Source: Oculina patagonica
Lineage: Eukaryota
NCBI RefSeq assembly: GCF_052425735.1
Contig: NC_135768.1
Span: 18,228,001-18,292,000, forward strand
Direction of reading: 5' to 3'
DNA length: 64,000 nt
Both the position numbers and the translations under genes were made by a program. The notes under the pieces were generated by a model. It saw only the letters and a list, made by a program, of their open reading frames with translations, searched no databases and was not told where the DNA came from. Position 1 is the first letter of the stretch. Every line of letters begins with the position of its first letter. Of the stretch, positions 8,764-27,376 are shown in pieces.

Positions 8764-9699
8764 ATGTACCATAACGTGACTATTTCACCTACGAAACCTC
8801 CGCTCGCTAAAAATTCTGTCTTTTAAGCGTCAACTCTTTCATCTTCAGTTGCCCTCGCCCTTTCCTCGCCTGTAACAGTAACATTAAATGCTCTGGTTTT
8901 GGCGGCAATCTGGAGGAAACCGTCCCTCAGAACAACTTCTTACATTCTTCTCGCTGGATTGGCATTTACCGACTTTTGCAGTGGGTTAGTTAATCACCCT
9001 CTTTTGGTTGCAATTGGGATGATCTACCTAACTGACCATCAGATGATTTCAGCTGATGAAAAGAGCTGGCCGACATCTTTACTTACATTAATTGCTATTG
9101 CAAGAGCATTCAGTATGTACTTTTTTCAAGTTACGATACTTATAATGACATTTATGTCCATTGAACGATGGCTGCACATGTCTCGTCGATCTTTAGTCAC
9201 TGTTCGCCGCGCCTCGTTTATGGTTGCAGTAATTTTGCTCATTCCAATGCCGTTGGCCGTGACTCATGTTCAAGAATTCAGTATTTTCTTAGTTAGAGTT
9301 GTTGTTATCTCAATTTTGCTATTTTGCCTTTCTCTTACATCAGTGGCTTACTTTAAAGTTTTCAGAATAATTCGTCTTCATCAACAGCAAATTCACGCCA
9401 ACGAATTGTCCCAAAACGTTGCTCAACCAGCGATCAACTTCGAGAAGTACAAGAAATCCATTTTTACAATCCTTTATATTTTAGCTCTTTTCTATATATC
9501 CTACTTGCCCACAGTTATCTCTTTGGGGTCAGTGCTAGTTTTGTCGATGAATGAATTCACTTCTATATTTCTAATCGCATCAACGATACTCGTTTGTTTA
9601 TCTTCTTTACTTAATCCTCTTCTGTACTTGTGGCGAATGAATGATATTCGAACTGAAGTCAGGGATTTAGTTAAGAAAATGATTTGTATTAACAGCTAG
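8764..9699 (+). pseudogene. Class A GPCR copy 3, one premature TAA at codon 21 (8824-8826), otherwise intact
   Basis: ATG TAC CAT AAC at 8764 matches the paralog starts. TTT TAA replaces TTT TAT. The downstream ORF 8899-9699 is in frame and carries the TM2-TM7 motifs. Confidence 0.88.
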
Positions 9700-11257
9700 A
9701 TACCAAGTATTAGTTGATTGAACAGTTTCCCATTGCATCTCTAATGAAGGAAGTTATAGGAGATTTTTTGTTCAAAGAGACTCGCTGAGCTGCATTCTGA
9801 ATTAATGTTGAATAAATTTAACTTTTGAAATAATTATCGCATCTCGTCTTCAGTCTTTTTAACTCGTAAAGACAGGTTTCTTTGAGACGTCATTAACAAA
9901 ACATTAGCTAAAAGACGGACAACGGAATTTGGATGAGTGTCGAGCTTTTAAAACTGAGATGCCTTTGCTCACCAAGCAAGGCCCGAATCCAGTCGTGCAA
10001 GTTTTAACATTCTGTCAGTGTGGTAACAAAACAGTCGGTAAAAAAATCATCGACTTGTCGAGCCTAGAAATTGAAGCCAGCGAAAGCCACATTGGCACTG
10101 ATTTAATATTCTGTTCCTAATACCCGCTTTACAGATTCAGGTTACTGTTAGTGTACTTGTTAACGGGTTTCTTGCGTCCAAAAATGGAACATAGTGAAGT
10201 CTAAATGACGCGATTTCTTTGGGCGTCACTACCTCTGCGAGGTCCTGCAAGACACGTATTACTATTAAGAAAGCCTGCAAATAACGCCAGTCATTTTTGC
10301 TACCATAATCTCACTCAAAGAAGACCCATCCGTGTGGCATATACATTTCTTTGGCTTGTTCTCACGACTCGTTTACATTGAGCAGTAATAATGAGAAATC
10401 TTTTTAATACAAAGAAATTCAATTAGTGCAATATCTCTTTTCCGAAGGCCAACGGCTAAGAACATTACATATGTACTATGATTAAATTCAAAAGACGCAG
10501 CTGCAGAGAGAATTACAAACCTCCAATTCCTCTTCACAGTGCAATTAAAGGATTGGCTGAAAAAATATTATATTTGCAGCACTTTAGCAAAGACAAACGA
10601 TTTTTATCTTTTTACACCACTTACTTTCGCAAAGATAAATCGTTCGGCGATTTTCTGCTCACTCTTTAGCTCAATCTTAGACATATTCATGTACTATCGA
10701 AAAATTGTTAAAAAATAATATACTTAAAAGATATCATCATCTGTAGTAGTTGCAGGTTAGCGCATTTCATTTGTCTTTATAAAGCACAGTTCGGTTACCA
10801 AGAAGAATAATCGTGCCTTTCGCTTTTCTTTGAAATGGAAAGATACAAAGACAACAGCGGCTGCTGTGCCTTATAGATCATTCTTTAATATATCTTTATT
10901 TATCTTTGAGTAGTAATTGCTAGAATTCTGACAATAAGGTTTTCAGTGAAAAGCTAAATGCAATTACAAGAAAAATCTTTTTTCGGACAACCTACTGCTA
11001 TGTTAATTGTCCTCCCTGATGAAATCGGGGAAAAAAGGCCCAACGGAGGGATATTGCTAGCAAATCACCCAAGGGCTTAAAAGCTTTGAATGAAAAATAT
11101 GCTTTGTGTACTAGATTGGATATTAAAAGAATATTATTGAAAAAATAATCCATGAGCAACACTATAAATAGCAAGTGAAGTGATCTTACCTTATTTTATA
11201 ACACAGTTTTGTAGGTTAAAATATAGTCCTCATTTCTTGGCTATAGGCTGCATCAAC

Positions 11258-12196
11258 ATGTACCATAACATGACTAATTCGCCTACAATACCTCCTCTCG
11301 ACAAAAATTCTGTTTTTTATGCATCAAGTGTTTCATTTTCAGTTCTCCTCACCTTGTTTTCGCCTATAGCAGTGACAGGAAATGCTCTTGTTTTTACGGC
11401 AATCTTGAGGAACCCGTCCATTAGAACTCCTTCTTACATTCTTCTCGCTGGATTGGCGTTTACCGACTTTTGCACTGGATTGATCGTTATTCCTATTTTG
11501 GTTGCGAATGTGTTGATCTACCTAACAGACCATCAGATGATCTTAGCTGACACAAATAGCTGGTCGACTGCTTTTATGACAACAAGAGCTATTGGCAGAG
11601 GTTGCAGTTTGTATGTTAGCTTCCAAGTCACGATACTGACAACAACCCTCATGTCCATTGAGCGATGGCTGCACATGTCTCGTCGATCTTTAGTCACTGT
11701 TCGCCGCGCCTGGTTTACTGTTACAGTACTTTTGCTCATTCCAATCCCGTTGGTTGTGACTTACGTTCAAGATTTCAGTACTTCCTTTCTTAGGACTGCT
11801 ATGATTTCAATTTTGGTGTTTTGCCTTACTCTCACATCTGTAGCTTACTTAAAAATTTTCGGAATAATTCGTCGTCATCAGCAGCAAATTCACGCGAACA
11901 AATTGTCCCAAAACGTTGCTCAACCAGCGATCAACTTTGAGAAGTACAAGAAATCCGTTTTTACAATCCTTTATATTCTAGCTGTTTTCTACATAAGTTA
12001 CTTGCCCACAGTTGTCTGTTTAGGGTTAGCCCTAGTTTTATCGATAACTGAATTTACTTTTATATTTTTCACTGTTTCAGAGATACTTGTATATTTATCT
12101 TCTTTACTTAACCCTCTACTGTACTTGTGGCGAATGAATGATATTCGAAGTGAAGTCAGGGGTTTAGTTAGGAAAATATTTTGTCAAGACAGCTAG
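11258..12196 (+). CDS. Intronless class A orphan GPCR (312 aa), copy 4
   Basis: First ATG (MYHNMTNS) matches the paralog starts. 7 hydrophobic segments; GN, LAFTD, SIERW, SYLP and NPLLY motifs; N-terminal N-glycosylation sequon. Confidence 0.93.
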   Translation: MYHNMTNSPTIPPLDKNSVFYASSVSFSVLLTLFSPIAVTGNALVFTAILRNPSIRTPSYILLAGLAFTDFCTGLIVIPILVANVLIYLTDHQMILADTNSWSTAFMTTRAIGRGCSLYVSFQVTILTTTLMSIERWLHMSRRSLVTVRRAWFTVTVLLLIPIPLVVTYVQDFSTSFLRTAMISILVFCLTLTSVAYLKIFGIIRRHQQQIHANKLSQNVAQPAINFEKYKKSVFTILYILAVFYISYLPTVVCLGLALVLSITEFTFIFFTVSEILVYLSSLLNPLLYLWRMNDIRSEVRGLVRKIFCQDS

Positions 12197-13448: not shown

Positions 13449-13704
13449 GGCAGCATGGCCTAGTGGTCAGGGCGCTGGACTTGTAATCCGAGGTACCTGG
13501 TTCAAATCCTCCTCCCTGCCACTAGATGGATTTGTCTTCGGTGGACCCGAATTCAACTCCTCCACCCAACTGGTTAGCCTCATGTCAGCTGGGATTTTTT
13601 AACAAGTTTCTCTTTGATTTACAATATTTGTTTCCTCAGATTTACAGTGTCAGTGAATGAAGACCCACTTTATGGAAATGCCACTGCAAACTCCCATTAT
13701 TATT
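13449..13704 (+). mobile_element. tRNA-derived SINE
   Basis: A box TGGCCTAGTGG, B box GGTTCAAATCC, non-tRNA body and ATT tail. Absent at the paralogous position 9890-9910. Confidence 0.85.
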
Positions 13705-22790: not shown

Positions 22791-24267
22791 TGTCATGCAT
22801 GGACAGACTCTCTTGTTACAATTTACAAAACTATCTATCGGTGCAACTGGCCATGTGTACAGTGCACTTGGGCCGCTTCACAGTTATGGTTGTCTTAAGA
22901 GTGTGCTTTCAGGTTCATGTACCTTAGTTAGAAACATGTTCGTTATTTAGCGTTGTTAGCATGGACCTATTAATCTTTAGGTCAAACATTCTCCCTTTAC
23001 TGTATGTCCAATGTATCTGACCTGAATGAATCAGCGCATGAATGTGCTTATGTCTTTTACCCCCCTGCTTGGCATTTTCATACAATCTTATATCATGTTG
23101 AATAAATAGGCCTCGGATATTATTTTAGTCCTTGGCTTTATCTTAGTCTAGCAATTTCATCAGTCCAATCTATTCGCTCAGTCAGTACCTACAATGTATT
23201 ACTAGGTATGCTTTGTATGTACAGCAAATGACAAGCCAAAAATAATTAGTGTTCAAACGGATGGTTTAAAAAAAATAGCACCTCTATACTTATAATTTAC
23301 TTTGTATGGATTACAGTCTCACCTAAACTTCCCACTTGTTGTAACCTACCATTGCCATTCAGGTTGCTTATAGGTCTAAACTCTAAGTTGTGATTGTTGT
23401 GCTATTGGGTTAATTTGTCCTAAATGCTACAGTGGTCATGAGAATTTCCAGTGGCCATATTCTTCACTGTTATATGCTAGTGAAAATTATGTTCTCTTCT
23501 TTACTATTACATTGTCAGTGGGTTGTGTCCGTTGCTTTGGCTTCGGGTGGGGTGCCCGCTCACTCGTACCTCATGGCGGGCTGTGGCGGGTTCTCCCTCA
23601 CCTTTGCTGGGATAATACTTTAAGGTTTCCATATTTTAAGCTTTCTATCCTTGATATAAAAAATAAACGGCCACACCCGTGGCCAAAATCTGCCAAATGG
23701 TAGTCTTGTCTTTTATTATCCCAGCAAACAGAGCTTTGCCAAAGCAACACATACATACTTGTTTATATGCATGGTATCTAATCTAGGAGGAACAGGATAC
23801 ATAAAAAGATATTACCAATTGCAGCACTAAGAGACGAATCGCTTTCCATTTATTTTCATAAAGCGCAATTTAGTTACCAAGAAATATAATCACGCCTCGC
23901 GCTTTTCTTTAAAATAGTACAGTGACGTCTTTAAAACATATTTGACTATCTTTGAGAAGTCATTGCTAAAATTGTGACGAAAAGGTTTTAATATAAAGCT
24001 AAATGCAATTACAGGAAATATCTTCTTTTGTATAACGTACTGCTAAAGAAATCGGCCCAGCGGAGGGATATTACAAACCATGAAAGCCCTTAAAAGCTTT
24101 TATAAAAACTACGGTACGCTTTGTAAACTTGAATGAATATAAAAACCTTATGAAAAACACTGATTAGTAACACTTTAAATAGCAGGTGAAGTGTTCTTAC
24201 TTTATTTTACGGCTCAGTTTTGTAGGCTAAAGAATAATCATCATTTCTTTGCTATAGGCTGTACGCC

Positions 24268-24356
24268 ATGTACGATAACGTAACTAATTCACCTACAAAA
24301 CCTCCTCTCAACCAAAGTTCTGCTTTAAATACATCAAATTAATTATTTTCAGTTCT
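24268..24356 (+). pseudogene. 5' GPCR fragment (MYDNVTNSPTKPPLNQSSALNTSN*) with its promoter
   Basis: Matches the clade-A N-termini and is preceded by the conserved promoter block. Similarity ends at an (ATT)n tract near 24357. Confidence 0.85.
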
Positions 24357-24491
24357 TTATTATTATTATTTTTGTAGCAGCCTTTAATAGTTCACGTCTC
24401 TTCTTTCTATATTTGTCAACCAATCATATTTCATATTTTTAATTAGCACTGTTTCAAATATTGTATTTTTCCATTTTTACTTAGCTTTTTC

Positions 24492-24552
24492 AGGCCCTGA
24501 AGAAGGTTAGTTTTGTCTAGCCGAAAAATTGTGGAAAAAAAAATTTAGGCCT
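24492..24552 (+). ncRNA. Type I hammerhead ribozyme (probably from a Penelope-like element terminal repeat)
   Basis: Stem I AGGCC/GGCCT; core CTGAAGA plus one extra A; stem II GGTTAG-ttttgt-CTAGCC; GAA; stem III AAATT/AATTT; cleavage triplet UUA ending at 24547. Confidence 0.72.
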
Positions 24553-25320
24553 TTTTAGCTGTCCAATCAGCCTTCCATTTGGTTTAACGTTATATGAGAA
24601 TGTTTGTTTTTTAAGTGTTACATTGGATTTGGCTGAAAATTTTAAATGACTTAAATGTTTTAGAACATCCAAGGTTATTTGAAATATTTTGAATTAAAAT
24701 AATAATATTAAGTTAAAATAACGCATTTGCCTGGGAGAGTGAACGAGTTGAATTTTAACATCAAACGTCATTTTTGTAAACAACAAACTACAATTTTGCA
24801 AATTACTATTTGTGGAGATCAAATATTACGCAAATCATTCCGAGCTTAATTTGACAAACTCACCTGAGAAGTGTTGAAATATTAATTAAAAGAAGAAAAT
24901 TGTATTTCAGTAGGAAATGGATACACGTCATCTAAATTTACAGGTTTTTAAGAAAGATGAAAAGATTTAAACATGTCAGTAACGTTTTCATTGATAAGCA
25001 TATTCACGAATGACAAATTTAATTTTGATTATATTTTTAGGTTGTTTACTGACTTAAATTAATTGTTCTATAATTATAGGTTCATACTTCAACTTTTTTG
25101 AAATTGAGCGCAATACTGTTTGCGAGCGACGGAAGTTAATTTTATTCAATTGCTTTCACTATTCAATATCCAAATATTTAATCATGGTTACAGAGACAAA
25201 ACCATTTGCAAAATTTCCCCGAAAGTACCTGTCTTATATTCGTTTCCATACGTAAAGCAACCGAGAACAGTTTTCTTTCGGTGAACCAACCTAACTTCGT
25301 ATAACAGAAGGAAGATAAAT

Positions 25321-26295
25321 ATGTGCAATAACACAACGGCTTGGTTTAGCTTTTTTAACATGTCCCGAAACTTAGACAATGATGGGACAAACCACAACAT
25401 TTCTCTATATATGATAACTATGTCGACTTCCATTGCCATCGTCATTTTATCGCCAGTGGCAGTAGCAGGGAATGCTCTGGTTTTGGCGGCAATTTGGAGG
25501 AACCCATCTCTCAGAACACCATCTTACATTCTGCTCACTGGATTGGCCATCACTGACTTTAGCACTGGGCTCATAAGTCAGCCGTTTTATGTTGCAATGG
25601 AGTTGATCCAACTGGCAGACCCTCAGCTGAAAACAGTTGTCAACAGGCAAACGTCCTTCATAATAACAGCTATCGGAAAAGGCTCCGCCACATATTTTAT
25701 TCCTGTGACGACGTCCATTATAGCAGTTATGTCCATCGAACGTTGGCTACACATGACTCGCCGATCTTTGCTTACAGTGCGCCGTGTCACCTATACAGTT
25801 GCAGGACTATTTCTCCTTTCGATTCCAATTGTTGCATATCGCGTACTGGCCATTCTTAATAACACAATTTTTTCACCAGTTATAGACATTGCTTCTTTGT
25901 CATTCTTACTCTTTTGCCTTATTGTTACCTCAGTAGCTTACTTTAAAGTTTTCCGAATCATTCGAACTCATCAGCGCCAAATTCAGGCGAACTATTTATC
26001 TCAAGCCTCTGGTCAACCAGCGATCAACTTTTCTAAGTACGAAAAATCAGTTTTCACCATCCTCTATATTTTAGCAATTTTCTATGTTAGTTATTTCCCC
26101 ACTGCTATTGCCTTTGGACTCTATCTATTTTGGGGAAATAAGTACATATCTGCGACAAAGCCACTCTTTAATTTGTCAATGGTGTTTTTATTTTTGTCTT
26201 CTTCACTAAATCCTATCCTTTACTTGTGGAGAATGAGCGATATTCGAAATGAAGTTACAAGTTTGGTTAAAGGAAAACTCTGCAAAGTCAACTAG
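25321..26295 (+). CDS. Intronless class A orphan GPCR (324 aa), copy 5
   Basis: Intact ORF, 7 TM, LAITD/SIERW/NPILY, several N-terminal sequons. Confidence 0.94.
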   Translation: MCNNTTAWFSFFNMSRNLDNDGTNHNISLYMITMSTSIAIVILSPVAVAGNALVLAAIWRNPSLRTPSYILLTGLAITDFSTGLISQPFYVAMELIQLADPQLKTVVNRQTSFIITAIGKGSATYFIPVTTSIIAVMSIERWLHMTRRSLLTVRRVTYTVAGLFLLSIPIVAYRVLAILNNTIFSPVIDIASLSFLLFCLIVTSVAYFKVFRIIRTHQRQIQANYLSQASGQPAINFSKYEKSVFTILYILAIFYVSYFPTAIAFGLYLFWGNKYISATKPLFNLSMVFLFLSSSLNPILYLWRMSDIRNEVTSLVKGKLCKVN

Positions 26296-27376
26296 ATAAA
26301 ATGAAAATGTCTTTCTATTAGAAGTATATTATTTGCGGAATTGTTGAAATGTTAGAAAGGGAAAATAAATATGCACACGACATATTTAAATTACAAAACT
26401 ACTACATGTGGTTCTTTTTGGAGCTTGGGCAAAGTGCCGCCAGCATAAATGGATGATTTAATCCAAAGATAGAACGAGGTTTGTAGCTCATGTAAAAATA
26501 CAAAAGTAAAGATTATTAATCTGTATATATTCTGATGTAGAAATAATGCGAAGAATGTTTTCTAGATTAATGAAAATGATATGTAATCCCCCTTTCTAAT
26601 TCAAATAGCAAATTTGTGCATCAAGTATAAGCAAGAATAATCGCAATCTTTTTATTGAAATTGAAATCGAAAGAAAGGAATGAATAGACTTTTCATACCC
26701 AAGTTATTAAACCCTACATGTAAATAAATGAATAGCACCTTTTGGTCAAACAAAGTCACGATATCATGAAGATAAAACCCTGTGTACAAACTGCGTATAA
26801 TTACTAAGCTGAATAAAAGTGAGATGATTGATTGCTATATTTTTTATATTGTTATTTATTTTTCAATAGTTAATCACACTTTTAATTAAAGTTCCCTTGA
26901 CCAGCAAACGAAAACATTCTTATTTAAAATTCTAAATGTTTTTATTCAGATTGTAAGCTTTATGTTAACCTAAAATTTAATATTTATAGAAGTCAAGTTT
27001 AATAACTATTTCTTCATAAAAGTTGGAAAAGAAAAATGAATAGACATTTTATCCAAATTATTCACCTCCAAATATAAACAGATGAAGAGCGTTTCTCCTG
27101 TCTTCAATTGTTTTGCTGAATCAGTCAGTCAAACACACTTATTAAACCTAGAGATCCAATCTCTGCAAGGTAGATGAAAATTAATAAAAAAATGTCATGG
27201 AAAAATGGTTGTATATGTAATTTATTTCAACACAGTTCAGTTGATTGAAAATCGGAGGCAGTGACTTGTTCGCCCCTTCAGTGCTGTTTATAATTTTCCA
27301 TTTCATTAAACTTTTGAATGACTCAGTTTTCTTGTGTATAACTCGTGTGCTTTTTTTAATTAAAAAATGCTAGCTG

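Follow-up and report, generated by a model that had tools for sequence, protein, structure and literature searches.

A decayed 3' tail attributed to a Penelope-like element, with a degenerate minimal hammerhead motif, at a broken receptor gene copy of Oculina patagonica

Minimal hammerhead ribozymes borne by Penelope-like retroelements (PLEs) have been documented in animals, and by the thousand in stony corals (PMC4209133, PMC7229834), Acropora millepora being one of the species in which they are reported (PMC7229834). In the metazoan motifs, helix I is short (4-5 bp) and helix II long, the G10.1-C11.1 pair is conserved, and a nucleotide stands between positions 9 and 10.1; a palindromic tetranucleotide takes the place of helix III, and a dimer, built from two copies in tandem or inverted, is presumed to be the active form (Cervera & de la Pena 2014, PMC4209133). 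The activity of intact examples in vitro is low; it was observed with dimers, and with molecules given an engineered helix III it was seen mostly at non-physiological Mg2+ (PMC4209133). For an anole PLE, cleavage depended on the protein of the element, and insertion in vitro did not require it (PMC11167929). Another related system is that of the non-LTR retrozymes of corals and other animals, in which units of 170-400 bp, each with a canonical type I hammerhead, are repeated in tandem (Cervera & de la Pena 2020, PMC7229834). For A. millepora alone, the reported number of type I hammerhead motifs exceeds 6000 (PMC7229834).

The locus described here lies in a window of 64 kb, by which we mean the whole stretch of DNA analysed, and all positions are those of the window. 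A preliminary description had placed a complete type I hammerhead at 24492-24552, just downstream of the point where a receptor gene copy is truncated. In our reading, an old PLE retrotransposition very probably left a decayed 3' tail in place of part of that receptor, and the fold drawn at 24492-24552 consists of fortuitous stems on an inherited ribozyme core. The relevant features, all on the + strand, are as follows.

23928..24267, + strand: upstream (promoter-like) block of a receptor paralog, 72-76% identical to the upstream regions of receptor open reading frames (ORFs)
24268..24342, + strand: receptor 5' remnant, ATG, 23 further codons and TAA (translation MYDNVTNSPTKPPLNQSSALNTSN, then stop), from alignment to paralog starts and translation
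24350..24603, + strand: 5'-truncated 3' tail (3' UTR / pLTR part) attributed to a Penelope-like retroelement, a dispersed repeat whose longer copies reach a GIY-YIG frame
24493..24534, + strand: decayed ancestral PLE minimal hammerhead, from the 29-copy alignment and its consensus
24493-24496, + strand: ancestral helix I, 5' strand, GGCC (consensus GCCC)
24497-24503, + strand: ancestral core CTGAAGA, followed by an extra A at 24504
24505-24510/24517-24522, + strand: helix II, followed by GAA at 24523-24525
24526-24529, + strand: former palindrome, AAAT (consensus ATAT)
24530, + strand: U17, with the ancestral cut site at 24530/24531
24531-24534, + strand: ancestral helix I, 3' strand, GTGG (consensus GGGC)
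24526..24552, + strand: copy-specific stem III, A17 (24547) and 3' strand of stem I, created by substitutions private to this copy (24494, 24527 and 24542-24548) as against the consensus
24604..25320, + strand: native upstream region of the intact receptor gene, unique except for one paralogous copy 212 kb away
25321..26295, + strand: intact intronless rhodopsin-type 7TM receptor ORF of 324 aa, from the ORF list (Pfam 7tm_1, E=2.4e-17)

When the tail region was compared with the genome by BLAST, as the preliminary description had suggested, 24360-24620 proved to be a dispersed repeat with at least 52 matches in the 529-Mb genome. A plain core pattern of 34 nt, with up to three mismatches allowed, retrieved at least 64 family copies from the genome and none in the reversed control. 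The copies share a common 3' end near 24600 and vary in their 5' reach, most of them measuring only 120-430 bp; head-to-head inverted pairs, 50-140 bp apart, are found on C12, C7, C6, C2 and C3, and tandem arrays of the family were not seen among the genome matches, which comprise solo copies and head-to-head pairs only. The window copy stands apart from its nearest genomic relative at only 86% identity. Longer copies extend upstream into a decayed reading frame with a stop codon. In one of these (L008), the frame encodes a decayed GIY-YIG domain that matches the GIY-YIG frame of locus L050 (blastx, E 6e-25) and also residues 926-968 of the 1047-aa frame of locus L074 (blastx, E 4e-10), which scores for both RVT_1 and GIY-YIG in Pfam and is therefore taken as a full-length PLE. 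The window copy begins about 20 nt after the family's stop codon and thus comprises untranslated tail only. A reverse transcriptase (RT)-bearing master of this exact tail family was not found among the copies retrieved. By these sequence relationships, 24350-24603 is assigned to a Penelope-like element.

GIY-YIG matches are frequent in this genome (at least 150), many of them as inverted pairs. The full-length locus L074 (G000:C11:8543300-8547400) has a 1047-aa open frame flanked by identical minimal hammerheads at 439 and 3841, about 130 nt outside each frame end, and is probably a young, possibly active copy; motifs in both flanks of the frame agree with what has been published for PLE pseudo-LTRs. 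A further group of at least 10 GIY-YIG matches with frames of identical length (1371 aa) was considered as PLEs and rejected, as these are helicase+GIY-YIG genes in which Pfam finds no RT and which have no hammerhead nearby; they combine an SF1-type helicase (AAA_19/Viral_helicase1/AAA_30) with GIY-YIG, as in L072 (G000:C3:1323200-1328000, minus strand) and also L040-L049. Two mirror-image loci 400 kb apart, L005 and L006 (G000:C3:20760163-20763370 and 20359191-20362398), each hold a head-to-head pair of PLE tails, one arm of which is broken by an insert of about 270 bp with a tRNA-like T-arm (GGGTTCGATTCCC).

The consensus of the family, built from an alignment of 29 copies, reads ...CAGCCC CTGAAGA A GGTTAG-TTTTGT-CTAACC GAA ATAT T^GGGC AATAAAATTTATTTAGCC, with the cut after U17. 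It has a 4-bp helix I, an extra nucleotide after A9, the G10.1-C11.1 pair, a 6-bp helix II and a palindromic AUAU replacing helix III, and thus carries all layout features of the published PLE minimal hammerheads (PMC4209133); its place is 3' of a GIY-YIG frame, and like the published families, this one occurs as many dispersed and head-to-head copies. About half of the sampled copies have a complete helix I (GCCC/GGGC), and the ATAT palindrome is kept in all but about 4 of 64 genomic core matches.

When a descriptor of our own was used, which matches consensus-like copies and not the window copy, some 11 further families at PLE loci proved to have the same layout, with helices that differ in sequence and covary. 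Examples from three of these families are GCTC CTGAAGA A GGCCG..CGGCC GAA ACGT A^GAGC, TCACC CTGAGGA A GGCCGG..CCGGCC GAA ATAT A^GGTGA, and ATCC CTGATGA T GCCG..CGGC GAA AGCT T^GGAT. From the beginning of the GIY-YIG match to the minimal motif, the usual distance at PLE loci is 370-560 nt, and motif and reading frame share a strand. In a search for the core alone, which set no condition on pairing, 121 kb of PLE loci yielded 38 cores, 29 of them with helices I and II of at least 4 bp; the 2 cores from reversed sequence and the 8 from the window all lacked such helices. The PLE that comes closest to the window family is L050 (G000:C12:19560086-19563349). At about 2080-2130 it has the motif GGCC CTGTAGA A GACTAG..CTAGTC GAA ATAT C^GGCC, whose helices I and II covary with those of the window family; a T stands in place of A6, and this core substitution would be expected to abolish activity.

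Relative to this consensus, the window copy shows 12 differences in 87 nt. One falls in the 5' strand of helix I (24494 C>G), one in the palindrome (24527 T>A) and two in the 3' strand of helix I (24532 G>T and 24534 C>G), which leaves one of the four ancestral helix I pairs (GGCC/GTGG). Kept are the extra A24504 between positions 9 and 10.1, the G24505-C24522 pair and the 6-bp helix II. No second family copy or other minimal hammerhead, and hence no dimer partner, was found in the 64-kb window. Unlike intact PLE minimal hammerheads, the window copy is thus solo and lacks helix I as well as the palindrome. Judged against the alignment, it is a decayed member of the known class, deficient in helix I and palindrome where the family has every feature, and it would be catalytically dead or nearly so.

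As letters, everything listed in the preliminary description for 24492-24552 is present: AGGCC (24492-24496) and GGCCT (24548-24552) for stem I, CTGAAGA (24497-24503), GAA (24523-24525), a 6-bp stem II with one G-U pair (GGTTAG 24505-24510/CTAGCC 24517-24522), and AAATT (24526-24530) with AATTT (24542-24546) for stem III, which makes A24547 the would-be cleavage nucleotide. The extra A at 24504, between A9 and stem II, had gone unmentioned. The generic core (C3 U4 G5 A6 N7 G8 A9, then G12 A13 A14) occurs in order around helix II, and three helices with A15.1-U16.1 and H17 can be drawn only by use of the copy-specific stems. Core and helix II of the 'complete type I hammerhead' are inherited, whereas stems I and III and the cut site are private to this copy. 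None of the 29 other aligned copies has this stem I, stem III or cut site, and none of the 21 core-keeping copies that could be tested for the fold forms it. The private changes that break the ancestral ribozyme are the same that create the AAATT/AATTT stem and, together with those at 24542-24548, the GGCC/GGCC pairing.

The proposed structure lies 1.3 kcal/mol above the minimum-energy fold, in which U4-A7 of the core pair with UUUA before the 3' GGCC, and its stem III, five A-U pairs closing an 11-nt loop, has a pair probability of about 5%. The 69-nt segment as a whole folds no better than shuffled sequences (z = -0.9). When the inherited core was kept and the downstream 74 nt were dinucleotide-shuffled, an equally good fold was obtained in 0.28% of shuffles, a low rate for any single copy, though with so many tails in the genome one such case is to be expected. 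A hammerhead search, also suggested in the preliminary description and run here with the Rfam models, yielded no match at the gathering score in the whole window, none at E<=10 with lax filters in 24300-24700 (401 nt), and none in 20 family copies. As a control, a canonical type I motif in locus L037 was weakly detected (25.8 bits to HH9), and the bona fide PLE minimal motifs in L034 and L035 were missed; since the models overlook this class, the blank on the window is weak evidence.

The extra A has a counterpart in a viroid: in the CChMVd (+) hammerhead, de la Pena and Flores, in 2001, reportedly described an additional A located between A9 and G10.1. The window motif has its extra A at the same core position, where it is tolerated in an active natural hammerhead; in contrast to the window motif, that of CChMVd is a viroid type III ribozyme with stable helices, and the two are not linked by evolution. 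Since the fold at 24492-24552 retains every core nucleotide that is strictly required, weak self-cleavage at high Mg2+ is possible.

On the + strand, the window contains a tandem array of intronless rhodopsin-type 7TM ORFs (ORF list and Pfam, 64-kb window). The region 23928-24337 is 72% identical to 10882-11327, a stretch that includes the beginning of the receptor ORF at 11180 and the sequence before it, and it matches three further paralog 5' regions, belonging to the ORFs at 8899 and at about 4290 and to the window start (37-160). A TATA-like TTTAAATAGCA at 24174-24184 aligns with TATAAATAGCA of the paralogs, and the ATG at 24268 and the N-terminal codons line up with the paralog start codons. 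The orphaned receptor 5' fragment of the preliminary description, with promoter block and 24-codon ORF, is therefore real as sequence. The frame ends at TAA (24340-24342), within receptor-derived sequence and about 10 nt before the junction with the PLE tail, and the alignment shows TATA box and reading frame of the remnant already mutated relative to the paralogs. On conservation alone, 23928..24267 may be a promoter. Receptor homology ends at about 24352, and the hammerhead begins about 140 nt later on the same strand. A tRNA pseudogene or a repeat derived from a tRNA may lie elsewhere inside the receptor array, at 13449-13517 (+), where the tRNA match is weak (31.3 bits, barely over the gathering score) and several pairs are non-standard.

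The junctions of the PLE tail lie at about 24350-24357 on the left and at about 24601-24604 on the right. To its right, 24596-25320 has one other genomic match, at 84% identity, 212 kb off and in inverted orientation. This match belongs to an inverted paralog of the two-receptor block, L031 (G000:C11:18036000-18043500), located 212 kb upstream of the window position, with which 24590-26790 is collinear (4453-2306 of L031, 82% over 2.2 kb). L031 has, in this order, a homologue of 24196-24356, a receptor-like stretch of about 820 bp, a further 400 bp or so, and the homologue of 24590-26790; it contains no copy of the PLE-tail repeat. Relative to it, about 1.2 kb of receptor coding and 3' sequence are missing in the window, exactly at the PLE tail. 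Since every ORF in L031 is shorter than 200 aa, its two receptors are apparently pseudogenes, and this decayed paralog shows architecture only and does not stand for an intact or empty 'before' allele. The claim that a PLE end broke the receptor copy holds on this comparison, since the tail sits, in sense orientation, precisely where the receptor sequence is missing.

Insertions of 5'-truncated retroelements with target-site deletion are well known for L1 and other elements that insert by target-primed reverse transcription (TPRT). The window locus resembles these in that the element meets the target with its canonical 3' end and is truncated at its 5' end, about 1.2 kb of target are gone and no target-site duplication is found at the junctions of 24350-24603, the last being expected if target DNA was lost; it differs in that the comparison is with a paralog instead of an empty allele. 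The deletion of about 1.2 kb may have happened at integration.

The course of events that we favour would begin with an old retrotransposition that left the last ~250 bp of a PLE within one G protein-coupled receptor (GPCR) gene of the tandem array. The tail would have brought the element's own minimal type I hammerhead, thought to work only through palindrome pairing between two copies and to process element transcripts. Neutral decay would then have destroyed helix I and palindrome in the window copy, and three private changes would by chance have supplied a new 5-bp A-U stem and the downstream GGCC/GGCC pairing, mimicking a textbook monomeric hammerhead.

Against this stands the proposal that 24492-24552 works as a monomeric type I hammerhead: RNA started at the orphan promoter would be cut after 24547, with the effect of insulating the receptor at 25321 or of releasing a defined short RNA. 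It draws on the complete set of core positions and drawable helices, on a fold rarer than chance for this copy, and on the sense orientation between the conserved TATA-like block and the intact receptor. However, the conserved ribozyme of the family is of the dimer type and would cut after 24530, and the substitutions that make the private fold are those that break it; stem III is seldom paired and the minimum-energy fold ties up U4-A7; Rfam gives no match; and even PLE hammerheads with an artificially extended helix III cut mostly at non-physiological Mg2+ (PMC4209133). The promoter end of the proposal suffers from the mutated TATA box and frame of the remnant and from two ATTAAA signals between the remnant promoter and the receptor. 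In one sequencing run, guessed to be RNA, 6% of the sampled words were found, and its contigs were 90-99% alike; they look like other copies or relatives and not like the window locus, as is indicated by loose ends such as ...GGGCAATAAAA, in the consensus-type letters of other family copies. With the ancestral motif broken, no partner copy and a marginal replacement fold, insulation and short RNA are unsupported, and a working ribozyme at this site is highly improbable. Equally slight is the chance that, through the three private substitutions, a PLE minimal hammerhead once dependent on dimerisation has become a monomeric type I ribozyme that needs no partner, has its own 5-bp helix III and cuts at 24547/24548. 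If it were so, a sense-oriented ribozyme between orphan promoter and intact receptor could trim or terminate read-through RNA, and the rewired hammerhead would be a natural case of ribozyme re-registration and exaptation. As it stands, we infer no role of the tail for the neighbouring receptor.

Two further explanations concern the origin of the letters. The tail could be a copy of a short non-autonomous hammerhead element that moves by means of PLE enzymes, either a retrozyme or one resembling a SINE, like Sm-alpha in Schistosoma, as would suit the shortness of most copies, the missing RT-bearing family master, the retrozyme-size tandem units with canonical type I hammerheads that adjoin PLE ends in this genome, and a 2026 preprint that derives animal retrozymes from PLE pLTRs (10.64898/2026.07.22.740005). 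Yet a common 3' end with variable 5' reach is what 5' truncation would give, the longer copies enter a recognisable GIY-YIG frame ending in a stop codon, and no tandem arrays of the family were seen, which together make this origin improbable, if somewhat less so than a working ribozyme. Hardly any probability attaches to the explanation that the hammerhead-like letters arose by pure chance in AT-rich intergenic DNA with no ribozyme lineage: while the Rfam result and the fold z-score would agree with it, and seven other CUGANGA...GAAA core strings occur in the window by chance, the core and helix II are inherited from a family whose consensus is a full PLE minimal hammerhead, and the same arrangement, its helices covarying, is seen in other families at a set place 3' of the GIY-YIG frame, by which pure chance is refuted.

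The likeness to non-LTR retrozymes (Cervera & de la Pena 2020, PMC7229834) extends to a short AT-rich unit of about 230-250 bp, a type I hammerhead and a coral-type genome. Unlike these, the window family is not tandem, has a minimal hammerhead with neither loop 1/loop 2 contacts nor a real helix III, and runs upstream into a PLE reading frame; as the family has no tandem arrays, the window tail is not classed as a retrozyme. Units that look like retrozymes are nevertheless present elsewhere in the genome. At L058 (G000:C7:21242002-21244800), a PLE minimal hammerhead at +554 precedes two canonical type I motifs of the same strand (+826 and +1069, helix III ACAGTACTGT), which are 243 nt apart, and L054 has the same type of arrangement (+527 and +772, spacing 245 nt). 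Both look like a retrozyme-size tandem unit abutting a PLE 3' end, and tandem units of 243-245 nt with canonical type I hammerheads fit the figures published for Acropora (PMC7229834).

The feature is thus a real but ordinary instance of an already known kind and, as an old, decayed and solo PLE tail, has little significance beyond annotation. A descriptor match may combine a truly inherited ribozyme core with fortuitous new stems, and since such a combination can mislead, the family consensus should be checked before a cut site is named. For the receptor array, the tail provides a clean example of a PLE tail lying exactly where part of a tandem-array gene is missing.
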